Virus record (IMG/VR): IMGVR_UViG_3300026097_000876
Coordinates: 62,001 to 126,000 of that record
Strand: one strand, 5' to 3'
Length of the DNA stretch: 64,000 nt
Every line of letters starts with the position of its first letter. Within the stretch, counting starts at the first letter, position 1. Position numbers and translations under genes: made by a program. Below the pieces are notes generated by a model. That model had not been told where the DNA came from, made no database searches, and was given only the letters and a program-made list of their open reading frames with translations. Positions 1 to 63,284 of this stretch are shown in pieces.

Positions 1-2
1 AT

Positions 3-368
3 ATGCAAAACTTTACACAAGCAGCACTTGCAGACGTGCAAGCACTAGTTAACACTTACGCTAATATTGCGGGCGATTACGAAGCAACGCTGTTATGCGG
101 CGTATGGCACTACATGTGCGACAGCGGCATATACACAGACGCATTTAGCGAAGCAGATGCGGAGTATGTAGAAGCGCACTACGACAACAATGTGCAATAC
201 TACAACGACGACGATTGCGGCTACACAGACGCATTTTATGCTGTAATATTTGACGACGATAAATTGCAATGCAATGCAGTGTTACAAGCACAAGATGCAA
301 TTGCAAACAAGCATAATTTGCATAACGAAGATGTTGCACGTATGTGTATGCAACTAGAAGCAAGTTAA
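3..368 (+). CDS. Early hypothetical protein, acidic, 121 aa
   Basis: ORF from ATG at 3; followed by an early promoter; D/E-rich; no Pro. Confidence 0.75.
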   Translation: MQNFTQAALADVQALVNTYANIAGDYEATLLCGVWHYMCDSGIYTDAFSEADAEYVEAHYDNNVQYYNDDDCGYTDAFYAVIFDDDKLQCNAVLQAQDAIANKHNLHNEDVARMCMQLEAS

Positions 369-381
369 TTGTAAAAAACAC

Positions 382-410
382 TTGACAGCAGCATGCTTTT
401 GTAGTATGCT
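382..410 (+). promoter_or_regulatory. Early sigma70-type promoter
   Basis: TTGACA(382-387)-17 bp-TATGCT(405-410); GAGGGC RBS at 438. Confidence 0.8.
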
Positions 411-448
411 GCTGCATATACACTAAAAAATTGCAAAGAGGGCAAACT

Positions 449-901
449 ATGCAATACAACAAGATTTTTACAAACTGCGCTGTAGTAAGCGACGAGAATT
501 TTGACTTGCTTACAGCAGAACAGCTAGAAGCATTTACACAAGCGGAACGTGCTTTTGTGCTTGTGTTTTTAGCAGACACACTTGCAAACTTGACACAGGT
601 TAACGCAGACTGTGCAGTAGAAAACGACAACTACTTTGTGCGACTAGCGGATGCGCAGGAGGTTATGCAAAATTTGCAAATGCTGTACGACACACTAGAC
701 GACAGCGACGACTGTACAAATATACAGTTTACGCTAGCGGATGCGGGTGCTGCGCTGTGTAGTTACGACACAGAATACAGGGAATGCATAGCGGAGCAAT
801 TTGAAGACGCATGCGACAACGCTGCTAAACTTGCAAAGCAAACTGGCAACACAAACGCAGACTACAGCACACTTGCTGTGCGTGTGCTGTGTAGTTATTA
901 A
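449..901 (+). CDS. Early hypothetical protein, acidic, 150 aa
   Basis: ATG 449 after GAGGGC RBS (ORF track starts at TTG 431). Confidence 0.8.
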   Translation: MQYNKIFTNCAVVSDENFDLLTAEQLEAFTQAERAFVLVFLADTLANLTQVNADCAVENDNYFVRLADAQEVMQNLQMLYDTLDDSDDCTNIQFTLADAGAALCSYDTEYRECIAEQFEDACDNAAKLAKQTGNTNADYSTLAVRVLCSY

Positions 902-908
902 AAAGGGG

Positions 909-937
909 TTGACAAATGTGTTTATGTGTGCTACTAT
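909..937 (+). promoter_or_regulatory. Early sigma70-type promoter
   Basis: TTGACA-17-TACTAT; GAGGGC at 963. Confidence 0.8.
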
Positions 938-973
938 GTACACATAAACAATTAATTGCAAAGAGGGCACGCT

Positions 974-1177
974 ATGCAAAAACTAAACGAAAAAGCACTA
1001 CAGCAGTGGAACGCAACACGGCGTTTTATGCGTACACTAGACGAAGCGCAGCTGCATTTATTAATAGCGGCGCTAGACGGCGACAACAAGTTGCAAGTTA
1101 CGCAAACGCTAGTAGACAGCGCATATGACGCAATAGACGACAACATGCGCAAACAATATGCACAACACTTAAAATAG
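974..1177 (+). CDS. Early hypothetical protein, 67 aa
   Basis: ATG 974 after GAGGGC RBS. Confidence 0.8.
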   Translation: MQKLNEKALQQWNATRRFMRTLDEAQLHLLIAALDGDNKLQVTQTLVDSAYDAIDDNMRKQYAQHLK

Positions 1178-1180
1178 GGG

Positions 1181-1208
1181 TTGACAACTGTGCATATTGT
1201 GTTATACT
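1181..1208 (+). promoter_or_regulatory. Early promoter, -10 enclosed in an 11-bp inverted repeat
   Basis: TTGACA-16-TATACT with TGn extension; AACTGTGCATA(1186-1196)/TATGCACAGTT(1210-1220). Confidence 0.8.
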
Positions 1209-1241
1209 GTATGCACAGTTAAACAATATAGAGGGCACTAT

Positions 1242-1502
1242 ATGCAAAACACTACATACTATCCTGCCGCAGTCGCAAACGTTATAACACATTACGCACA
1301 AGCAATTGCACGTGCTAGTTATGACAGCGTAGTGGAAGCAGGCGACTACAGCATAACAGACAACTGTGCAAAAATACAGTACCTGTTGTCTGCTAGTGCG
1401 CAACACACCTCAGTTAAAAGTCTAGCAGTTGCCGCACTAAACAGCGCAGAGGATACAGTGCTGCGCGAATGCATGTACACACAATTAATGCAACACGCAT
1501 AA
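1242..1502 (+). CDS. Early hypothetical protein, 86 aa
   Basis: ATG 1242 after GAGGGC at 1231. Confidence 0.8.
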   Translation: MQNTTYYPAAVANVITHYAQAIARASYDSVVEAGDYSITDNCAKIQYLLSASAQHTSVKSLAVAALNSAEDTVLRECMYTQLMQHA

Positions 1503-3768: not shown

Positions 3769-3942
3769 ATGCAAGGCACAATCCGAATCGTAGCAGGCTT
3801 CTTCCTTATGTTAGGCGGCGTAGGCGCCATCGAAAGCAACACAGAAGTCACAGTTCCGCTAGATAGCTTGGCAATTGCTGTTGCGGGTTTGGTTATTATG
3901 GCAAGCGGTGCATTGGCCGCGGCTCGACAGGAGACAGTGTAA
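3769..3942 (+). CDS. Small membrane protein, 57 aa, two predicted TM helices
   Basis: Read by hand; ATG after GAGGGA; MQGTIRIVAGFFLMLGGVG...LAIAVAGLVIMASGALAAA. Confidence 0.7.
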   Translation: MQGTIRIVAGFFLMLGGVGAIESNTEVTVPLDSLAIAVAGLVIMASGALAAARQETV

Positions 3943-4142
3943 TGGAAACGGTAACAGTCTACAAAGACTCATATGATCAACTTTGTGAAGAGCGGAATGC
4001 TGCCAGCTATAACTTGGCCACGCTCAAAGGTATGCTGATCGGCCTAAGCGGCTACTGTGATGAGCATCCGCAGATTGTATCGGACCGCATTAAAGAAATT
4101 GCACAAAAACTTGAATTAGAGGTTGACATCTCTAAACTTTGA
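3942..4142 (+). CDS. Hypothetical protein, 66 aa
   Basis: ORF track; TAATG coupling. Confidence 0.75.
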   Translation: METVTVYKDSYDQLCEERNAASYNLATLKGMLIGLSGYCDEHPQIVSDRIKEIAQKLELEVDISKL

Positions 4143-4151
4143 TCGTATACT
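4123..4151 (+). promoter_or_regulatory. Early sigma70-type promoter
   Basis: TTGACA-17-TATACT. Confidence 0.85.
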
Positions 4152-4187
4152 GTATAGACAATGTTAAACAACGCGAGGGCAAACGCA

Positions 4188-4346
4188 ATGGATTACAGAG
4201 ATTACGCAATTGAAATGGTTGAAGACGGCATAGTAGATCCTATGATGATGCTTACGGCCGCTCTCAAATATATGAGCCAAGACGACGTTCGTGATATGCT
4301 TACAGCGAACGAACTGGACTCACGCTTCGAAGAGGAGGACGCATAA
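4188..4346 (+). CDS. Hypothetical protein, 52 aa
   Basis: ATG 4188 after GAGGGC. Confidence 0.7.
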   Translation: MDYRDYAIEMVEDGIVDPMMMLTAALKYMSQDDVRDMLTANELDSRFEEEDA

Positions 4347-4831
4347 TGCCTAACTGGTGCATGAACAATGCAGACATCACAGCCACAACAGAAGAGCAGA
4401 AGGCACTGTTGTATCGTGTAAGCACAGCAGAAGCCGCAGACGGATTCTTCGAACTGCTTCGTCCACTGGGAGAGTGGGACTACAATAACTCAGTGGACAA
4501 CTGGGGAACCAAGTGGGATGTAGAACCTCTGAGTATGGAATACGATGGCACAACACTCACAGCATCGTTCGACTCAGCCTGGGCACCACCAGTGGCACTG
4601 TATGAGTATTTGAAAGAACAGGGCTTCGAAGTATCAGCCAACTATTACGAACCCGGCATGGACTTCGCAGGCGAGTGGACGGATGGTGATGACTTCGTGT
4701 TAGAGGATGTAGCAGAACTTGCTCGTGGTGATGAGAGTGCTCTGAGCAAACGCGAATACGACATCCTGGAGCAATGGGGCATCTTTGAAGACGTTGCCAT
4801 GTGGGATGAAGAACTTCAGGAAATAGATTAA
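4346..4831 (+). CDS. DUF1281/YubB-like ferredoxin-fold protein
   Basis: MPNWCxN, WGTKWD, FDSAWAPP, YYEPGMDFAG motifs. Confidence 0.7.
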   Translation: MPNWCMNNADITATTEEQKALLYRVSTAEAADGFFELLRPLGEWDYNNSVDNWGTKWDVEPLSMEYDGTTLTASFDSAWAPPVALYEYLKEQGFEVSANYYEPGMDFAGEWTDGDDFVLEDVAELARGDESALSKREYDILEQWGIFEDVAMWDEELQEID

Positions 4832-4841
4832 TTAAAGTTAT

Positions 4842-4918
4842 CTCCGCGTAGCTCAGCTGGATAGAGCATGGGATTTCTAATCCCAGGGTCGCAGGTTCGA
4901 ATCCTGCCGCGGAGGCCA
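4842..4918 (+). tRNA. trnR: tRNA-Arg(UCU)
   Basis: Cloverleaf; anticodon loop TTTCTAA; GGTTCGAATCC T-arm; encoded CCA. Confidence 0.95.
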
Positions 4919-4924
4919 AATTTA

Positions 4925-5011
4925 GCTCCCTTGGTGGAATAGGTAGACACAAGAGACTTAAAATCTCTCGCTGGAAACAGTGTCCCGGTTCGAGTCCGGG
5001 AGGGAGCACCA
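4925..5011 (+). tRNA. trnL: tRNA-Leu(UAA)
   Basis: Long variable arm; loop CTTAAAA; encoded CCA. Confidence 0.95.
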
Positions 5012-5017
5012 AGTTAA

Positions 5018-5093
5018 GGACCTATAGCTCAGTGGTTAGAGCACCCCACTCATAATGGGTTGGTCCCTGGTTCGAGTCCAGGTGGGTCCACCA
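5018..5093 (+). tRNA. trnI: tRNA with CAU anticodon, most likely Ile2 (lysidine, reads AUA)
   Basis: Loop CTCATAA; body closely resembles bacterial tRNA-Ile2 (AGCTCAGTGGTTAGAGCA...CTCATAAT...TTGGTC.CTGGTTC); CCA end. Confidence 0.85.
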
Positions 5094-5111
5094 ATACAAA
5101 GGAGAAGACGA

Positions 5112-5381
5112 ATGTCAATTTACGAAGTGTCACCGGAATACAAGAAGCTATGCCACGTCGGTGCTGATATGCAGGACTGGTCCGAGAACTATGGTAAGCT
5201 CCACGGACTGAAAGATGTCACGGACGATGGTTTACGCATGCTCAATCAAATGAGCCAAGTAGGCTGTATGCTCACACGTTTGGGCACTACCTTTGGCACA
5301 ACTGAGAAGAGCTTCACAGATGAAGACAAGCAATTAATTTCAAAATTTATGCAGAATAAGGTTGACATCGAGCGCAAGTGA
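5112..5381 (+). CDS. Hypothetical protein, 89 aa
   Basis: ATG 5112 after AGGAG. Confidence 0.75.
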   Translation: MSIYEVSPEYKKLCHVGADMQDWSENYGKLHGLKDVTDDGLRMLNQMSQVGCMLTRLGTTFGTTEKSFTDEDKQLISKFMQNKVDIERK

Positions 5382-6036: not shown

Positions 6037-7047
6037 ATGCAGAACATTAGAATTTTAGAAGGCACTTACAAGATCCGCGGCAAAGAAGTTGAACTGGCCG
6101 GAATGGTATTTCCACTGGTAGAAGAGTTCAAGGTTGGTGCGGGCGGCGGCTACGTAACGGTGAATGGTGCAACGGTCGCAGGCTTTCCGGACCGCAACAT
6201 CAAGATCAAATGCGAGAGCGCACAGTCATACGAGATTGTAGACAGCTCCGTAGCCGTCGTCCAGCGTGAGGAGACCGATGAAGAGACTATCGATCGCCTG
6301 CGTGAACGTTTCGACATGTTGGAGGAGATGACCAAAGCCTGCAAGAAAGGCGATGTACGTGCAATGATTGTGAGTGGCCCTCCAGGTGTTGGTAAGAGTC
6401 ACGGTGTAGAAAAAGTACTAGGCAAGCACGATCTTCTAGCAGAGATTGCCAACGACGAGAAGCTGAAGAAGTACGAAGTGGTCAAGGGCGCGATGAGTGC
6501 GATTGGTTTGTATGTAAAGCTATACAAGATGGCAGACAAAGACAACGTGGTAGTGTTCGATGACTGTGACAGTATCTTTTCAGATGAACTCAGCCTTAAT
6601 ATTTTAAAAGCGGCACTGGACACAAAGAAGACACGTCGCATCTGTTGGAACACTGACAGCTTCAAGCTGCGCAACGAAGGTGTGCCAGATAGCTTTGAGT
6701 TCAAAGGTAGTGCGATCTTTATCACCAACATCAAGTTCGACAACGTCAAGAGCAAGAAGATGCGTGATCACCTAGAAGCACTTGAAAGCCGTTGCCACTA
6801 TGTTGATCTAACAATCGACACAGAGCGAGAGAAGATGTTGCGCATCAAGCAGATTGTTACCGACGGTATGCTGGACGAATACAGATTCGACGAAGAAGTA
6901 CATCAAGAGATTGTAGACTTTGTTGATATTAATAAGAAGCGACTGCGTGAGCTGTCATTAAGAACAGTGTTGAAAGTCGCCGACTTAGCCAAAGCATTTC
7001 CCAGCAATTGGGAAGCGATGGCAGAGAACACAGTGATGAAACGTTAA
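6037..7047 (+). CDS. AAA+ P-loop ATPase
   Basis: Walker A GPPGVGKS; Walker B VVVFDDCD; sensor-1 FITN; SRC motif. Confidence 0.85.
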   Translation: MQNIRILEGTYKIRGKEVELAGMVFPLVEEFKVGAGGGYVTVNGATVAGFPDRNIKIKCESAQSYEIVDSSVAVVQREETDEETIDRLRERFDMLEEMTKACKKGDVRAMIVSGPPGVGKSHGVEKVLGKHDLLAEIANDEKLKKYEVVKGAMSAIGLYVKLYKMADKDNVVVFDDCDSIFSDELSLNILKAALDTKKTRRICWNTDSFKLRNEGVPDSFEFKGSAIFITNIKFDNVKSKKMRDHLEALESRCHYVDLTIDTEREKMLRIKQIVTDGMLDEYRFDEEVHQEIVDFVDINKKRLRELSLRTVLKVADLAKAFPSNWEAMAENTVMKR

Positions 7048-7156
7048 GCCCTCAACGACATCACTGGGTAGAAGTAGAGCATCCCTCATATGCCCTCACG
7101 CTCTACTTCGAAACTAGCCTCACTTGGACCGCCCTCATCCAAGTGGGGTTTTTTTT
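7048..7156 (+). ncRNA. Candidate 3'UTR-derived sRNA with CCCUCA loops complementary to the early-gene RBS
   Basis: 10-bp stem GAAGTAGAGC/GCTCTACTTC with loop ATCCCTCATATGCCCTCAC; terminator loop CCGCCCTCA; extra GCCCTCA at 7048. Confidence 0.55.
7118..7156 (+). terminator. Rho-independent terminator
   Basis: 11-bp stem CCTCACTTGGA/TCCAAGTGGGG followed by T8. Confidence 0.9.
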
Positions 7157-7158
7157 GG

Positions 7159-7187
7159 TTGACATCTCACCCCAACGACCTTATACT
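7159..7187 (+). promoter_or_regulatory. Early sigma70-type promoter
   Basis: TTGACA-17-TATACT; GAGGGC at 7206. Confidence 0.85.
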
Positions 7188-7217
7188 ATAAACAGTTAAA
7201 GCAAAGAGGGCAATCTT

Positions 7218-7502
7218 ATGTCGCAACGTCAAGCATTCGCAAATAACCACAACACACAACTCGCTCGCATAGTCAGCAAGCTCATCCGCAAGCACATTCC
7301 CACAAACCCACAGCTCACCACAGCATTCAATCAATTCAATCACAGCATGTATCTGCATCGTGTGTTGTACAAATATCATGTCAGCGCACTCAAGCACACA
7401 ATCCACAAGCCGCGCATGCAAGCCTATTTCGTTCGCATCCTGCGCAACAATCCACAAATCCTAGTCAACACCGCCCATACACCCACAGCATATCAAAAGT
7501 AA
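7218..7502 (+). CDS. Basic hypothetical protein, 94 aa, lacking D, E, G and W
   Basis: Promoter and GAGGGC RBS directly upstream. Confidence 0.7.
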   Translation: MSQRQAFANNHNTQLARIVSKLIRKHIPTNPQLTTAFNQFNHSMYLHRVLYKYHVSALKHTIHKPRMQAYFVRILRNNPQILVNTAHTPTAYQK

Positions 7503-7510
7503 AAAAGAGG

Positions 7511-7539
7511 TTGACAGCGTACGGCTTAGGTCGTATACT
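7511..7539 (+). promoter_or_regulatory. Early sigma70-type promoter
   Basis: TTGACA-17-TATACT; TGAGGGCA RBS. Confidence 0.85.
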
Positions 7540-7574
7540 TAATATAACAGTTAGCACGCCATGAGGGCAACAAG

Positions 7575-7736
7575 ATGAAGACTTCAGAAGAAATACAGGC
7601 TCAGATCCTCGAGTTGGAAGAGGAGATTGAAAACTACGAGTTTGGATCTTACCCGTATGATGTAGTGAATGCCGAGCTTCAATACCTGTATGCCTTCAAC
7701 TCAAATTCGGTTGACAGCAAACGGGGCACACCATGA
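7575..7736 (+). CDS. Small acidic protein, 53 aa (MKTSEEIQAQ...)
   Basis: Read by hand; RBS upstream. Confidence 0.65.
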   Translation: MKTSEEIQAQILELEEEIENYEFGSYPYDVVNAELQYLYAFNSNSVDSKRGTP

Positions 7737-7894
7737 ACGACTTTCAAGCACTACTAGAAGCACTAATTCCTTTCGTACAGTATGGATTCATCGCGGGCGT
7801 GACCATTGCTGTGATTGTGGCCGCGGCAAAGATCGGATTTAAGATTGCACCATACGTATTATTATTTGCTGCGATTGTTTACTTTTTCGGTTGA
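7733..7894 (+). CDS. Small membrane protein, 53 aa, two TM helices
   Basis: Read by hand; ATGA overlap; stop TGA lies inside the next -35 box. Confidence 0.7.
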   Translation: MNDFQALLEALIPFVQYGFIAGVTIAVIVAAAKIGFKIAPYVLLFAAIVYFFG

Positions 7895-7952: not shown

Positions 7953-8126
7953 ATGCATATCAACGACATCTACGCATTGCGTTCAGAGTTATCAAAGCTG
8001 TTAGCAAACGAAACTCCTGATCGACCAACCGTCCGTGCATTGATGAGTGCGGCCTGCGACGAGATCACAGAGTTCGAAGCACACCTAGAACTGATGGCAG
8101 AACGTGAGGAGGCAGCACAATGTTGA
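7953..8126 (+). CDS. Small hypothetical protein, 57 aa (MHINDIYALR...)
   Basis: Read by hand; RBS upstream. Confidence 0.65.
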   Translation: MHINDIYALRSELSKLLANETPDRPTVRALMSAACDEITEFEAHLELMAEREEAAQC

Positions 8127-8332
8127 AACTGTTACAACGACTGGTAGCACTACAAGAGAACCGTGACTATCGTACTAATGAGATCATATGGAACTATGTG
8201 GATGCTGATGCGTATCACTATGCGAGAGAACTGTACAACACAGACGATGAGTTCTATGATGCATTCAACGCAGCCGCTGACGAAATAGATCGTGAAATAG
8301 CACAGAAAATGGTTGACAACACAGCACACTGA
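8120..8332 (+). CDS. Hypothetical protein, 70 aa
   Basis: ORF track; GAGGAGG RBS. Confidence 0.75.
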   Translation: MLKLLQRLVALQENRDYRTNEIIWNYVDADAYHYARELYNTDDEFYDAFNAAADEIDREIAQKMVDNTAH

Positions 8333-8341
8333 CCATATACT
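8313..8341 (+). promoter_or_regulatory. Early sigma70-type promoter
   Basis: TTGACA-17-TATACT; near-identical to the promoter at 7891. Confidence 0.85.
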
Positions 8342-8376
8342 GTATACACAATGAAGCAATAGATAGAGGGCATACT

Positions 8377-8724
8377 ATGCAATTGGAACAACACAACATT
8401 GAACTAGCACACACTAACGCACTAGCAGCAGCTGAGGCAGCAAGCCAAGCGTTCGTGGACAAACACTTTGGTGGTAGAGACGCAGGCGCTTGTGGCTTTG
8501 CGCACGTAGCAGTGTTTGGTGTACGTGCTAACAGCAAGCTGGGCAAAGCACTAGAAGCAGTAACAGGAGCGCGGAAGTGTTATGATGGAGCATTCCAAAT
8601 CCGCAACACATGGTACCGTGGACAGAGTGTAGACGCAGCTGACGCAGGTGCGCAAGCATACAAGGACACATTCAAAGCACTAACAGGACTTGACAAAGTC
8701 TACGCAGCAAGTAGACTAGACTAA
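8377..8724 (+). CDS. Conserved phage hypothetical protein, 115 aa
   Basis: GAGGGC RBS; DAGACGFAHV...QSVDA..AGAQAY...SRLD pattern. Confidence 0.8.
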   Translation: MQLEQHNIELAHTNALAAAEAASQAFVDKHFGGRDAGACGFAHVAVFGVRANSKLGKALEAVTGARKCYDGAFQIRNTWYRGQSVDAADAGAQAYKDTFKALTGLDKVYAASRLD

Positions 8725-8864: not shown

Positions 8865-9047
8865 CTACACATCAAAGTGCAGTGTTACTGATTCAGGAAT
8901 ATAGTCTGCGTCAGTTACTTCGCCCATTTGCTCAAACAGTTCCGCACTGTGCAGTTCAAGTTCTTTTGCTGAGTAGTGCGAAAACGCTGTTACTTGCAAG
9001 TGTTGCGGTAGTGCTTGCAGCTGTGCTACTAGTTCGCTTACTAACAT
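8865..9047 (-). CDS. Early hypothetical protein, 60 aa (MLVSELVAQLQALPQH...)
   Basis: ATG 9047 after GGAG RBS and its own promoter. Confidence 0.75.
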   Translation of the reverse strand: MLVSELVAQLQALPQHLQVTAFSHYSAKELELHSAELFEQMGEVTDADYIPESVTLHFDV

Positions 9048-9079
9048 TATGTATTGCTCCGTTTTGTTACTGTTTATAT

Positions 9080-9107
9080 ATAATAACACAACACAACAAA
9101 AAGTCAA
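9080..9107 (-). promoter_or_regulatory. Early sigma70-type promoter, minus strand
   Basis: TTGACT-16-TATTAT with TG extension; AAACAGT leader like the + strand cassettes. Confidence 0.7.
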
Positions 9108-9250
9108 CACATTTGGCTGTGAAAAAAATTTCAATCACATCAAGGGGTTACCAAAACAATTTAAAAAATTTCTGAGGGGCGGGGCGTAGTAAGCTATTGT
9201 TTTTAAAGCTGTTTTTTAGTAGTAGTGGTACAAAATCACCAACCAACTTC

Positions 9251-59861: not shown

Positions 59862-60311
59862 ATGAATCAAGAAATCATTTGTAGTGGTGCATTAATTTAT
59901 TCTTTAAAATCTAAACGTTTTTTACTTTTGCATAGAACACAAAGTAAACAAAAAAATGTTTGGGGATTAGTAGGAGGAACAAACGGAAAAAATGAACGTC
60001 CGTGGCCTGCACTACAAAGAGAAATCATAGAAGAAGTTGGTGAACTTCCTAATATTGTAAAAACAATTCCGCTCGAAACATTTGTTAGCACAGATGAAAA
60101 ATTTAGTTTTCATACATATCTAGTAGTTGTTAATGACGAATTTTTACCAATATTAAACGAAGAACACGATGGTTACGCATGGGTAAGTTTTGACAAATGG
60201 CCCAAGCCATTACATCAAGGCCTACGCAATACATTACAAAATAAAACAAATCAAACAAAATTAAAAACCGTTTTTGACCTAATAGGATATTTACAAAATG
60301 AAGCAGATTAA
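59862..60311 (+). CDS. NUDIX hydrolase
   Basis: Nudix box GG..GKNE.PW.ALQREIIEEVG; LNEEHDGYAW. Confidence 0.8.
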   Translation: MNQEIICSGALIYSLKSKRFLLLHRTQSKQKNVWGLVGGTNGKNERPWPALQREIIEEVGELPNIVKTIPLETFVSTDEKFSFHTYLVVVNDEFLPILNEEHDGYAWVSFDKWPKPLHQGLRNTLQNKTNQTKLKTVFDLIGYLQNEAD

Positions 60312-61809
60312 AAACATTACTATTGTAGGTGGAGGTTCAGCCGCTTGGCTAGCAGCTACTTACATACAAAATAATCACTGGGACTTACCCATTACTGTAA
60401 TCGACAAAGAAGTAGGTAATCCTATAGGAGTGGGCGAAGCAACGGTGCTTACATTCCCACATTTTTTAAGAAAATGTGGTATAAATTTGCCAGAATGGTT
60501 TAGAAATATTGATGCTACATACAAGTCTGGCATTGAGTTTCCTCATTGGAAAAGACCTAACAATAATGTTTGGCATCCATTTTACCTAAATAGAAGTTAC
60601 TTTGCACAAGGATGTACAGCATATGACCTTTGGGCACAAAAGCAAGATCTAGATTTTAGAAAAACAGCACTTCCGACTTATAACGTTAATATGAATAACA
60701 AACTTGATATGTGGGGAGCATTTGAAACCCTTGCGTATCATATTGACGCTGGAAAACTTGTTACAGAGTTACAAACGATTTGTGGACAAAATGTTAATGT
60801 AATTAAAAGCGATGTTGTAAAAGTAAACAAAGATGGTAACAATGTAACTAGCGTTGAACTTAAAAACGGTGCTGTACATGAAAGTGACTTTTTTATCGAC
60901 TGTACAGGATTTGCTAGTATTCTTAAAGAAGCTGACCGTGTAGAGCTATTAGGTGAAGGAAGATTATTTACAAATGCTGCTGTTGCCGGACATATTCCGT
61001 ATGAAGATTTTGAAAAAGAATGTACTCCGTATGTAAAATGTCCTGCTGTTGATCACGGTTGGATCTGGAAGATACCTGTGCAATCACGCATCGGATCAGG
61101 ACTTGTATTTAATAAAGATATTACAGACCCAGAGGAAGCAAAACGTTATTTCTGCGAACACTGGGATAATCGAATAAAACCAGAAGATCTAAAGTTAATT
61201 GACTGGGTTCCTTATTACAGTAAAAACTTTTGGGAAGGTAACGTAGTTTCAATTGGACTAAGTGGCGGATTTATCGAACCGTTAGAGTCTACAGGGCTTG
61301 CTAGTATGACCACTGGTGTTGAAAAATTAATGGATATGATTCCTCAATATGCTTATACTGATGCTAATGTAGAAACTTATAATAGAGAAATGGAAGTTTG
61401 GTATAATGATGCTGTTGATTTTGTTAACAGCCATTATGCTGACACAGAATGGGATACACCTTTTTGGAATTATGTAAAAGAAACCCATGTAAAATCAGAA
61501 AAACATTTATGGTATGAAGATTGGTTAAAAGATCCACAACGTAAGTTTTATACTCCGGTGCAGTCACGCACACTGTTCCATCCGCCAAATTGGCATTTGT
61601 GGTTGGTACAAATGGGGTATCCAGTAAATGTAGATCTTAACTATATGCCTCCGCAAGAAATAGAGTTTCTTTTGAGAGATTTTCAACTGGCTGAAGAAAT
61701 TAGAATGCACACTAGTCAAAGTCATATAGATGCTATTGAATCAACTAATCTTGGATTAGACTGGTTAGTATTAGCACAGTCTAGGGGAGATAGGGGCCAA
61801 TTGGTATGA
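60298..61809 (+). CDS. Flavin-dependent (tryptophan) halogenase, copy A
   Basis: VGGGSAAW; GVGEAT; catalytic K in DATYK; GWIWKIP; FIEPLESTG. Confidence 0.9.
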   Translation: MKQIKNITIVGGGSAAWLAATYIQNNHWDLPITVIDKEVGNPIGVGEATVLTFPHFLRKCGINLPEWFRNIDATYKSGIEFPHWKRPNNNVWHPFYLNRSYFAQGCTAYDLWAQKQDLDFRKTALPTYNVNMNNKLDMWGAFETLAYHIDAGKLVTELQTICGQNVNVIKSDVVKVNKDGNNVTSVELKNGAVHESDFFIDCTGFASILKEADRVELLGEGRLFTNAAVAGHIPYEDFEKECTPYVKCPAVDHGWIWKIPVQSRIGSGLVFNKDITDPEEAKRYFCEHWDNRIKPEDLKLIDWVPYYSKNFWEGNVVSIGLSGGFIEPLESTGLASMTTGVEKLMDMIPQYAYTDANVETYNREMEVWYNDAVDFVNSHYADTEWDTPFWNYVKETHVKSEKHLWYEDWLKDPQRKFYTPVQSRTLFHPPNWHLWLVQMGYPVNVDLNYMPPQEIEFLLRDFQLAEEIRMHTSQSHIDAIESTNLGLDWLVLAQSRGDRGQLV

Positions 61810-63284
61810 AAATTGTAGTAGTCGGCGGCGGCACGGCTGGATGGCTTGCCGCATTAATGATTTCAAAAATACGTCCTGAACATGATGTCACTGTTATTGA
61901 AAGTAGTAAAATTGGCATTGTCGGTGCCGGGGAAGGTAGTACCGGAACACTTACAAATATTGTACAAAACGAAATGTGGAATCTTGGCTGTAACGAACAA
62001 GATTTTATCAAAGAGTGTGATGCTACAATCAAATTAGGAATTAAACATATAGGTTGGAATAAAGATCCTAAAAAATATTACATCGGTCCAATTGACGGAA
62101 CACCGACTTCTAACGACAGAGCCGATATTATTTTTCAACATGCCTTAGGTTACAGAGACGAAAATTTATTACATATTTCAACAGAGCTTGGTTATAAAAT
62201 TCATCATAATAAAAATAGTTTCGTTGAGACTGCTGGTAATCACGCATATCATTTTGATGCTCATAAAGTAGGAAAATACTTTAAAAAAGTTAGTAATACT
62301 GTAAAACATATTGACAGCGAAGTAGAACATGTTATACTAGACAGTGAATCAGGTAGAGTAAAAGAATTAAAATTGTCAAATGATGAAATAGTCCAAGGCG
62401 ATATGTTTATTGATGCAAGTGGCTTTCATCAAGTTTTAATGAAAGCTGTTGGAGGTAAATGGAAAAGTTATAAAGAAAATTTACCAGTTAATAGTGCATT
62501 ACCGTTTTTACTTCCATATGAAGAAGATGAAGTTATTGAACCTGTTACAAATGCATGGGCACAAAAAAACGGTTGGTGTTGGCAAATTCCAACAAAAGAA
62601 CGTCGAGGATGTGGATATGTATTTTGCGATGATTTTGTAACTCCTGATCAAGCACATGCTGAACTTGAGCAAACAATTGGTCGTAAAGTTGACCCAATTA
62701 GATTATTAAAATTTGATAGCGGAAGACAGGAAAAATTGTGGGTTAAAAATGTATTGTCTATCGGATTGTGTGCTGCGTTTGCAGAGCCGTTAGAAGCAAC
62801 AAGTATTCACACAACAATTATTCAGTTAAAACATTTTGTATTTGGTTGTTTAGGAGTTGATGTAGACGATACTTGTAATCCTGCACAAGTTGATAATTAC
62901 AATCAACAAAATGGTCATTTATACGACAATATGAAAGACTTTCTTGTTGCGCACTATACGTGTGGCAGAAATGATTCTGAATTTTGGAAACATATCGACA
63001 GCGGTGCAACAATTACTCCGTTTGTACAATCAATACACGAGATCTGCAAGCACAGGATGCCTAACTCAACTTTATTCCCACGCCAAGAGGGAAGTGCCGG
63101 ATGGCCTTTATGGAGTTTTGTTCTTGCAGGTACAGGAAAACTAACAGATACAATTGCTAGACAAGAACTTAAATTTAATCATGATGAAATGTTAAGCGAT
63201 AGTGCATATCAATATCACACAAAAGAACATCACTCAATGAGTGAATCATTACCGGATAATACCAACTACATAAAAGGCATTTAA
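61806..63284 (+). CDS. Flavin-dependent (tryptophan) halogenase, copy B
   Basis: VGGGTAGW; GAGEGS; DATIK; GWCWQIP; FAEPLEATS. Confidence 0.9.
   Translation: MKIVVVGGGTAGWLAALMISKIRPEHDVTVIESSKIGIVGAGEGSTGTLTNIVQNEMWNLGCNEQDFIKECDATIKLGIKHIGWNKDPKKYYIGPIDGTPTSNDRADIIFQHALGYRDENLLHISTELGYKIHHNKNSFVETAGNHAYHFDAHKVGKYFKKVSNTVKHIDSEVEHVILDSESGRVKELKLSNDEIVQGDMFIDASGFHQVLMKAVGGKWKSYKENLPVNSALPFLLPYEEDEVIEPVTNAWAQKNGWCWQIPTKERRGCGYVFCDDFVTPDQAHAELEQTIGRKVDPIRLLKFDSGRQEKLWVKNVLSIGLCAAFAEPLEATSIHTTIIQLKHFVFGCLGVDVDDTCNPAQVDNYNQQNGHLYDNMKDFLVAHYTCGRNDSEFWKHIDSGATITPFVQSIHEICKHRMPNSTLFPRQEGSAGWPLWSFVLAGTGKLTDTIARQELKFNHDEMLSDSAYQYHTKEHHSMSESLPDNTNYIKGI

Follow-up and report, generated by a model that had tools for sequence, protein, structure and literature searches.

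Selective loss of GA and GG from the coding strand of a small putative early gene of an uncultured jumbo phage

A small, conserved gene of an uncultured jumbo phage has had every G followed by a purine (GA or GG, denoted GR) removed from its coding strand by selection. The gene lies at 7218–7502 (+) of a 64 000-nucleotide stretch of IMG/VR record IMGVR_UViG_3300026097_000876 (the window, to which all coordinates refer unless stated), and it belongs to arrays of putative early genes that avoid either pyrimidine-C (TC or CC, denoted YC) or GR dinucleotides. We did not find this pattern in the literature searched, and we tentatively read it as a set of target-free messages that escape a dinucleotide-specific enzyme. 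The initial annotation had noted that GA and GG are missing from 7211 to 7506, and this observation is correct. Its interpretation of the segment is partly supported, as set out below.

The + strand from 7210 to 7507 (298 nt) contains neither GA nor GG and is the only GR-free run of at least 150 nt in the window; the next longest GR gap is 134 nt. Within 7211–7506 there are 38 G (26 GC and 12 GT). In 20 000 mononucleotide shuffles of the region the mean was 17.9 GR and the minimum 7, and resampling of synonymous codons with the protein held fixed gave a mean of 9.9 and a minimum of 1 in 20 000 trials. The absence therefore goes beyond the lack of Asp, Glu, Gly and Trp in the product; by our reading of the codons, all 15 G-ending codons are followed by a codon that starts with C or T. 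The left edge of the run is the last G of the GAGGG Shine-Dalgarno sequence (7206–7210), and the right edge is the GA at 7507–7508, in the AAAAAGAGG stretch just upstream of the next TTGACA −35 hexamer at 7511. An assembly artefact was ruled out: the sequence is identical in a contig from a second metagenome, a Logan contig of run X1 covers 6939–7800 with no differences (although that run may be the source sample), and the homologues come from JGI, ENA and Logan assemblies.

The 94-residue + strand ORF is a genuine gene. It has its own sigma-70-type promoter at 7159–7187 (+; TTGACA, 17 nt, TATACT; 11 of 12 consensus matches), one of 16 such + strand promoters between 382 and 8690, whose spacer is C-rich and YC-rich like the gene and contains one GA. 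The Shine-Dalgarno sequence lies inside the conserved leader AAAGAGGGCA, which also precedes the YC-free genes at 449 and 974, and supplies the only GA and GG dinucleotides between the inferred transcription start and the next promoter. Upstream, at 7071–7156 (+), two conserved hairpins with GCCCUCA in their loops follow the AAA ATPase gene (z = −5.0); the second, together with a U8 run, is the intrinsic terminator that isolates the gene from upstream transcription. Downstream, the promoter of the next early gene occupies 7511–7539 (+); its upstream GAGG ends the GR-free stretch, and no terminator lies in between. Against the 87%-identical homologue, 23 of 42 substitutions fall at third codon positions, and pairs of more distant homologues show 41–52 third-position against 15–21 second-position differences. 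The family comprises 20 homologue clusters plus distant members and has 28 invariant residues. By contrast, the antisense ORF at 7167–7457 (−; 96 residues) is not a gene but a by-product of the codon set used on the + strand, since its frame has 3–5 stops in seven sequenced homologues (one in the window's own copy) and the substitution pattern fits the + frame.

The protein is basic (net charge +13), has no Asp, Glu, Gly or Trp and is predicted to be all-α (confident AlphaFold2 model with six helices, pLDDT 82.8). Searches of Pfam, PHROGs and PADLOC and a PDB profile search gave no hit, Foldseek searches of PDB and BFVD gave best E-values of only 2.5 and 3.4, and the ESM Atlas returned unnamed clusters only. 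No nuclease, inhibitor or RNA-binding fold was recognizable.

The avoidance of GR is conserved and acts at the nucleotide level. Five diverged homologues (63–87% identity) have 0, 0, 0, 1 and 2-2 GR with 31–45 G, where synonymous resampling expects 8.6–10.7, and new G in relatives arise only before C or T. Three distant homologues have 2, 7 and 3 GR against 15, 22 and 15 expected. The avoidance persists down to about 35–45% identity, with 0–7 GR that sit almost all in Asp, Glu or Gly codons. Homologues almost completely lack Asp, Glu, Gly and Trp (mean of 1.0 per protein over 24 clusters). In three homologous loci (L083, L084 and L085) the GR-free run continues through the inferred 3′ UTR and the terminator hairpin. 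In the 5′ UTRs, GR is almost confined to the Shine-Dalgarno sequence, which necessarily keeps GA and GG, and two homologues have one extra GA there; transcript ends are inferred from sequence in each case.

The GR rule is the rarer of two coding-strand rules in this phage clade. An unbiased scan of all 16 dinucleotides over 84 related loci found that TC, CC, GA and GG account for 87 of 107 anomalous zero-runs. Across these loci 35 genes are YC-free, 24 of them with strong promoters; 27 have exactly 0 YC and 8 have 1, against 9–42 expected, so that the distribution is close to all-or-none. Three unrelated families of small basic proteins are GR-free and usually sit in the same promoter-per-gene arrays; the two families other than the 94-residue one, of 15 and 61 clusters, lie inside YC-free arrays. 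Within the window the mirror class is the YC-free block at 1–1262 (+), which extends 97 nt further upstream to give 1359 nt in all (3880–5238 of locus L001). It holds three + strand genes (3–368, 449–901 and 974–1177), all but the first promoter (which lies just upstream of the window) and the first 7 codons of a fourth gene, and its genes also show partial loss of GR. The rule follows the coding strand, since an inverted gene in locus L029 (6310–6654, minus strand) is YC-free on its own strand and is homologous to the + strand gene at 8015–8362 of locus L006; replication-strand explanations were rejected because the inverted gene keeps the rule on its own coding strand. The two avoidances are separable: the lineages of loci L012 and L029 avoid only YC, the 94-residue family avoids only GR, and the window's lineage avoids both where the protein allows (GR at codon junctions 3.1 against 14.5 per 100 codons). 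The avoidance is independent of reading frame, which rules out tRNA- or codon-level explanations.

Removal reflects selection and not mutation. At YC positions of unconstrained homologues the constrained genes carry C>G 31, C>A 23, C>T 24 and Y>R 10, and the same gene families are constrained in one phage and normal in another. A 41-kb early region of a PA5oct-like Pseudomonas phage shows no such runs, and megablast gave no match to any deposited phage.

These data bear directly on the initial annotation. Its proposal that this is a real + strand gene with a canonical promoter and ribosome-binding site, forming a genuine mirror image of the + strand YC-free genes in 1–1262, is confirmed. Two outcomes that it had named as refuting this view, an expressed antisense gene and homologues with normal Asp, Glu and Gly content, were examined through the conservation and composition of the homologues, and neither was borne out. 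Its suggestion that an old cassette had been inverted is not supported, because the constraint is actively maintained in the + orientation across homologues of 63–87% identity and, more weakly, in distant ones. Palindrome elimination is likewise not supported, and general palindrome or restriction-site avoidance was rejected. Palindromes that need no YC or GR are abundant in these segments (in 1–1262, TGCA 29 against 4.5 expected, GCGC 8 against 2.6 and CTAG 9 against 4.5). In the rest of the window 13 of the 16 palindromic 4-mers have ratios of 0.83–1.16, including the four that need both YC and GR (GATC 1.13, TCGA 1.00, CCGG 0.95 and GGCC 0.83), while AGCT (0.74) and CGCG (0.57) are lower. 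The annotation had also disfavoured a purely mRNA-level or template-level explanation because either strand can be the clean one. Setting aside an mRNA-level or coding-strand explanation is not supported either, since the rule follows the gene and not the genome strand and since some genes avoid both classes at once, which looks like two separable coding-strand rules. Its idea that one clean strand is enough survives as the main alternative discussed below, because YC and GR are exact complements.

Taken together, the sequence data establish that 7218–7502 is a real, separately promoted gene of a roughly 262-kb jumbo myovirus distantly related to PA5oct, that purifying selection keeps it free of GR from just after the Shine-Dalgarno sequence to its inferred 3′ end (at codon junctions, at synonymous sites and, in homologues, in the putative 3′ UTR and terminator stems), and that this is one of two avoidance regimes marking the promoter-per-gene arrays of the clade. 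What follows is inferred, as is early expression itself, for which no RNA sequencing run was listed for this sequence. We suggest, tentatively, that the avoided dinucleotide is the recognition unit of an enzyme acting on single-stranded nucleic acid early in infection, possibly an endoribonuclease or an mRNA-modifying enzyme, encoded by the host as a defence or by the phage as a shut-off tool. Because a single hit would inactivate a message, only a message with zero sites would stay translatable; the near all-or-none distribution of YC counts fits such single-hit inactivation. In this view the 94-residue protein must be made while a G-purine-directed activity is at work, and could be the counter-measure to that activity or a component of it that has to spare its own message. 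Several points weigh against the model. No agent was found among the scanned ORFs of the window (64 of 262 kb) or with PADLOC, Pfam and PHROGs. The Shine-Dalgarno sequence keeps GA and GG, so the message is not completely target-free. GR-free genes rich in YC sit in the same arrays as YC-free genes, so each gene would be proof against only one of two agents, and two independent agents whose targets happen to be exact reverse complements would be a coincidence (we estimate about 1 in 48 among simple degenerate dinucleotide classes). In addition, in first or isolated YC-free genes the clean block already starts at the −35 hexamer, upstream of the transcript (all 4 have no YC there, against 22% of 355 ordinary promoters).

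Agents with dinucleotide specificity are documented. CmdT, the mRNA ADP-ribosyltransferase of the anti-phage system CmdTAC, modifies the A of GA in single-stranded mRNA, and one modification can block translation (PMC11618068); this is exactly the kind of agent that a GA/GG-free message would escape. However, no CmdT-like gene is known here, GG is avoided as strictly as GA whereas CmdT modifies purine pairs other than GA only faintly, the gene keeps GA in its Shine-Dalgarno sequence (which the CmdT authors suggest as a possible target), and CmdTAC is triggered late, by capsid protein, whereas this gene is putatively early. Tth-MazF1 cuts at U|GN (PMC13107127), which shows that RNases with dinucleotide-level specificity exist. 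In the MazF-based single-protein production system, ACA-less messages remain translatable while all others are cut. The principle is the same, but those messages are engineered and avoid a 3-nt motif, whereas here the purge is natural, applies to dinucleotides, forbids whole amino acids and is conserved across gene families. Cas13 orthologues show collateral preferences for AU, UC, AC or GA (PMC10196884), of which UC and GA are of the two kinds avoided here; these are preferences and not strict specificities, and Cas13b occurs mainly in Bacteroidota, whereas this phage uses sigma-70 consensus promoters and strong Shine-Dalgarno sites. Phages also remove restriction sites, sometimes on one strand only, as with the Type III sites of T7 that all lie in one orientation, but those cases concern 4–8 bp sites genome-wide, whereas here dinucleotides are removed from individual transcription units.

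The main alternative, which we consider unlikely but the strongest competitor, is a single agent that needs YC and GR together in the same molecule or segment, such as a G-R:Y-C stacked pair in an RNA helix (YC can pair only with GA or GG) or nearby hits at YC on both DNA strands that produce a break. A gene would then be safe if either class is absent; proteins that need Asp, Glu or Gly would become YC-free and those that need Pro GR-free. This would make the reverse-complement relation of the two rules a necessity, and zero tolerance would be expected, since one stray YC among many GR makes a target. Indeed, both classes occur side by side in the same arrays, YC-free genes have no Pro and are mostly acidic, GR-free families have conserved Pro and almost no Asp, Glu or Gly, the isolated 94-residue gene shows no YC depletion at all, and arrays without GR-free members (L012, L029 and L011) show no GR depletion. 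On the other hand, arrays in the window and in locus L028 lose avoidable GR although they contain no YC, and the 81-residue family is depleted in both classes, neither of which would be needed if one clean class were enough. The GR-free genes also keep GA and GG in their promoter and Shine-Dalgarno sequence, within 10–60 nt of many YC. No + strand terminators lie in 1–2900, so array transcripts probably run on into YC-containing genes, which defeats the RNA version, and protecting about 1% of a 262-kb genome gives no obvious benefit in the DNA version. The YC-free RNAs are more structured than mononucleotide shuffles, not less (z −2.5 to −3.9), and no enzyme with such a requirement is known to us.

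Strand-specific DNA chemistry, the 'hemi-unmodified DNA' of the initial annotation, appears less likely still. Here a base modification or lesion of the virion DNA at G in GR (equivalently at C in YC on the other strand) would leave early genes in need of one unmodified strand to be read by the unaided host RNA polymerase. The start of the clean block of first or isolated YC-free genes at the −35 hexamer and not at the transcription start, and the dependence on template against non-template strand are consistent with this, phage 7-deazaguanine modifications are reported in GA and GGC contexts in CAjan and 9g, and the window carries many glycosyl-, sulfo-, carbamoyl- and methyltransferases of unknown substrate. 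Yet the two classes clean opposite strands relative to transcription, so a single rule such as an unmodified template cannot cover both, and status differs between close relatives for the same gene. No tRNA-guanine transglycosylase (DpdA-type) or queuosine-pathway domain appeared among about 40 ORFs scanned in the 64 of 262 kb seen. Major-groove modifications of that kind are generally transcribed without difficulty, and modification that acts on both strands genome-wide does not explain why single genes clear one strand. An explanation through Rho seems very unlikely. Its primary binding sites read 5′-YC on single-stranded RNA (PMC12360218), so that YC-free transcripts would be invisible to Rho-dependent termination and the GR-free message (97 C against 38 G, 45 YC in 285 nt, −0.13 kcal/mol per nt of predicted structure) would be an exposed loading RNA, acting as a decoy or a regulated target; GR being the only dinucleotides that can pair with YC, a GR-free RNA leaves all its YC unpaired. 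But Rho loading needs several YC within tens of nucleotides and selection should relax at low density, whereas 27 of 35 genes have exactly zero and Pro is forbidden outright. YC-rich GR-free genes embedded in the arrays would reintroduce Rho entry sites, a decoy does not require zero GR, and the protein is clearly under selection. Finally, a passive footprint is refuted as far as sequence data can go. TC/CC is the classical context of single-strand cytosine deaminases and the antisense frame of the window copy is open for 96 codons, but the mixed substitution types, the intact and conserved ORFs, the non-conserved antisense ORF, the deep maintenance of the constraint in the + orientation and the resampling tests exclude hypermutation, a recently inverted YC-free cassette and chance. 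An unstructured RNA as the purpose was also rejected, because YC-free messages fold better than mononucleotide shuffles and the GR-free message is weakly folded only because it is G-poor, as was base-pairing between the GR-free message and the YC-free array (longest complement 9 nt, the same as controls).

We could find no description of complete, conserved removal of a dinucleotide class from natural genes that is strong enough to ban Pro or Asp, Glu, Gly and Trp from the proteins. It is a clean case of selection on nucleotides overriding protein composition, and the signature is simple to compute and singles out, without any homology, a set of phage early genes under unusual pressure. If that pressure is a dinucleotide-specific RNase or mRNA modifier, the signature would reveal the specificity of an unknown defence or shut-off enzyme and point to the genes that counter it; it would also give a natural precedent for enzyme-proof messages, useful for expression systems. 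A broader reading, which remains possible although we regard it as more doubtful than not, is that a clade of uncultured aquatic jumbo phages writes its immediate-early arrays in a reduced dinucleotide alphabet (no YC, no GR, or neither) because an undescribed, widespread activity in their hosts or in the phages themselves reads single-stranded nucleic acid at the dinucleotide level. This could be a pair of RNases or mRNA modifiers or, more radically, one enzyme that needs a G-R:Y-C pair. The small acidic and basic proteins encoded in this way would then be a large untapped set of counter-defence or host-takeover factors, with the 94-residue family either the antidote to the G-purine-specific activity or the activity itself.

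Elsewhere in the window, a search of Rfam returned only the three tRNAs. The early gene at 8377–8724 (+) is partly YC-depleted (9 YC against 32 expected), and the minus-strand gene at 8865–9134, at the end of the early cluster, is YC-poor on its own coding strand (6 GR on the + strand in about 300 nt).

The window belongs to a 261,806-bp viral contig (IMGVR_UViG_3300026097_000876, positions 62001-126000) whose terminase (54.6% identity) and a virion protein point to the PA5oct-like jumbo myoviruses as the closest cultured relatives; no deposited phage matches at the DNA level. Positions 1 to about 9000 form a + strand early region with 16 near-identical sigma-70-type promoters between 382 and 8690, which match TTGACA, 16-17 nt, TATACT almost perfectly. 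Most of them are followed by ACAGTTA, the leader AAAGAGGGCA and a small ORF. The region is built of promoter-per-gene cassettes, and gene starts often read ATGCAAAAC (MQN). Three tRNA genes (Arg-TCT, Leu-TAA and Met-CAT, 4842-5093) lie inside the early region. From 10220 to 57158 the genes are on the minus strand and include the replication, sugar-modification, terminase and tail-sheath genes.

The absence of G-purine dinucleotides (GA and GG, here GR) described in the initial annotation is confirmed. The + strand 7210-7507 contains no GA or GG and is the only GR-free run of at least 150 nt in 64 kb. The 38 G in 7211-7506 are all followed by C or T, whereas mononucleotide shuffles give 17.9 GR on average and never fewer than 7. 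With the amino-acid sequence held fixed and codons redrawn from the usage of ordinary early genes, 9.9 GR are expected, and none of 20,000 draws reached zero. The companion claim, that 1-1262 is free of TC and CC (YC) on the + strand, is also correct, although this block starts 97 nt upstream of the window. Within 1-1262 TGCA occurs 29 times (4.5 expected) and GC is the commonest dinucleotide context for both G and C, a side effect of allowing C only after a purine while G is preferentially followed by a pyrimidine. The sequence is identical in a contig from another metagenome and in a Logan contig of a DNA run.

The ORF 7218-7502 is a real + strand gene, with a consensus promoter (7159-7187), a GAGGG Shine-Dalgarno sequence (7206-7210) and an upstream intrinsic terminator. 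Against an 87%-identical homologue, 23 substitutions fall at third codon positions, 12 at first and seven at second, and pairs of more distant homologues show the same pattern. The family has 20 clusters at 63-100% identity with 28 invariant residues, and a profile search adds members at E = 1e-15 to 1e-22. The antisense ORF 7167-7457, also pointed out in the initial annotation, carries 3-5 stops in seven sequenced homologues (one in the window's own copy) and is a by-product of the codon set used. AlphaFold2 gives a confident six-helix model (pLDDT 82.8), but no structural or sequence relative was found in PDB, BFVD, Pfam, PHROGs, PADLOC or the ESM Atlas. Upstream of the gene, at 7040-7158, are two strong hairpins (z = -5.0), conserved in the related loci L006 and L088, that display GCCCUCA in their loops, the exact complement of the early-gene Shine-Dalgarno UGAGGGC. 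The second hairpin is the terminator of the AAA ATPase gene; the pair may be an anti-Shine-Dalgarno regulatory RNA or a protein-binding site. Weak promoter-like sites (9 of 12 matches) are formed on the minus strand at 7570-7541, 7213-7185 and 7939-7910 by the reverse complement of each ribosome-binding site and -10 region (TTGCCC ... TATAxT). The one at 7570 would send antisense transcripts into the GR-free gene, but these sites are probably incidental.

The constraint is conserved and acts on nucleotides. DNA of five homologues at 63-87% protein identity carries 31-45 G each and only 0, 0, 0, 1 and 2-2 GR, against 8.6-10.7 expected from their own protein sequences. Three distant homologues have 2, 7 and 3 GR against 15-22 expected, and these lie almost only in Asp, Glu or Gly codons. 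Where the 87% homologue has gained a G, the next base is C or T. In the homologue-bearing loci L083, L084 and L085 the GR-free run continues past the stop codon through the terminator hairpin, whose stems are built from alternating GC/AC steps, and in the 5' UTRs GR is almost confined to the Shine-Dalgarno sequence. Neighbouring genes are ordinary.

The gene is one face of a wider phenomenon. Eighty related loci were fetched through the neighbouring AAA ATPase gene, and many carry long YC-free runs of up to 2 kb. In an unbiased scan of all 16 dinucleotides, TC, CC, GA and GG make up 87 of 107 anomalous zero-runs. A census of ORFs preceded by a ribosome-binding site identified 35 genes with at most 1 YC on the coding strand (9-42 expected), mostly encoding small acidic proteins and 24 with their own strong promoter; only five genes had at most 1 GR. 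The YC-free genes form arrays of 3-10 genes within the early clusters. Two further, unrelated GR-avoiding families were found inside such arrays: an 81-aa family (15 clusters, 13 with no Asp/Glu/Gly/Trp), which is also almost free of YC, and an 89-aa family (61 clusters with a mean of two such residues). A 41-kb early region of a PA5oct-like cultured Pseudomonas phage shows nothing comparable. Constraint status changes between close relatives, possibly by recombination at the shared promoter and leader: the fourth gene of the window's array (1242-1502) is YC-free only up to codon 7 (10 YC in all), while its homologue in locus L028 (568-828) has 1 YC, and the gene at 4188-4346 is ordinary here but YC-free in locus L027 (80-301).

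These comparisons exclude a number of explanations. The gene at 6310-6654 in locus L029 lies on the minus strand, is YC-free on that strand and is homologous to the + strand gene at 8015-8362 in L006; the rule thus follows the coding strand, which argues against replication-strand explanations. The same gene families are YC-free in one phage and ordinary in another, and at the YC positions of the ordinary copy the clean copy has C>G 31, C>A 23, C>T 24 and Y>R 10. This is selection, not the footprint of a cytosine deaminase. Palindromes that need neither YC nor GR are frequent in the clean segments, and in the rest of the window there is no general avoidance of 4-mer palindromes (13 of 16 have ratios of 0.83-1.16, with AGCT at 0.74 and CGCG at 0.57 lower); restriction-site avoidance is not the cause. 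The interpretation in the initial annotation is only partly supported: it correctly called a + strand gene, but the palindrome elimination that it favoured is not borne out. YC-free messages fold better than mononucleotide shuffles (z -2.5 to -3.9), the GR-free message is weakly folded simply because it is G-poor, and the two kinds of message have no special complementarity to each other.

The two avoidances can be separated. Arrays in the L012, L029 and L011 lineages avoid YC only, with 13.5 GR per 100 codons at codon junctions against 14.5 in ordinary genes, whereas the 94-aa family encoded at 7218-7502 avoids GR only and its YC is, if anything, enriched. In the window's lineage the YC-free genes also lose the avoidable GR (3.1 per 100 codons at junctions, and 1.7 against 6.2 at codon positions 2-3), and the 81-aa family avoids both classes. 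This favours two pressures on the coding strand. However, YC and GR are exact reverse complements, both classes share arrays, and the class a gene adopts follows its amino-acid needs (Pro against Asp/Glu/Gly), all of which would follow naturally if a single agent needed both dinucleotides together. We consider this rival the less likely, because of the double depletion, because GA and GG are kept in promoters and Shine-Dalgarno sequences next to many YC, and because the array lacks terminators, so that its transcripts probably run into YC-containing genes. One observation fits neither RNA-level reading. In four first or isolated YC-free genes (L006 11163-11445 and 5190-5450, L028 540-830 and L029 6734-7111) the clean block begins at the -35 hexamer, upstream of the inferred transcription start, whereas only 22% of 355 ordinary promoters lack YC there; the 40 nt further upstream are ordinary (2.75 YC). 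The cassettes are related to each other, however, and these four cases are not independent. A strand-specific DNA modification remains possible. Rho, whose primary sites bind YC, explains the YC rule poorly because it needs clusters of sites, and does not explain the GR rule at all.

The near all-or-none distribution (27 of 35 genes have exactly zero YC, and the 94-aa family has 0-2 GR) suggests that a single site is harmful, as does the cost paid in forbidden amino acids. This is the logic of a cut or an adduct on a single-stranded molecule, and enzymes of that kind with dinucleotide-level specificity are documented: CmdT ADP-ribosylates the A of GA in single-stranded mRNA and blocks translation, Cas13 orthologues prefer AU, UC, AC or GA, and a MazF homologue cuts U|GN. 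We therefore tentatively read the gene as a message that has been made invisible to a G-purine-directed activity, so that its product can be made while that activity is present. The sequence comparisons establish the gene, the selection against GR and the two coding-strand regimes; the activity itself, the timing of expression and any role of the protein are inferred from sequence alone, and no candidate enzyme was found in the quarter of the phage genome that was examined. The product could be the antidote or part of the activity, and the family-specific, context-independent conservation of the rule fits both.

About 280-500 nt upstream of window position 1 (3480-3700 of L001, the locus that includes the start of the window) is a non-coding region with three exact copies and one near copy of TGTGGATAA, the complement of the DnaA box TTATCCACA. 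It lies just before the divergence point of the early cluster and the YC-free array and is a possible replication origin. On the minus strand, 11020-37690 holds a dense set of genes encoding two carbon-nitrogen hydrolases, a carbamoyltransferase, a 2OG-Fe(II) oxygenase, six glycosyltransferases, a sulfotransferase, a methyltransferase, a cytidylyltransferase/mannose-6-phosphate isomerase fusion and a peptide deformylase, for which the substrate could be DNA, virion or cell-surface glycan. Two adjacent genes at 60298-63284 have full-length tryptophan-halogenase domains (E = 1e-85 and 2e-94).
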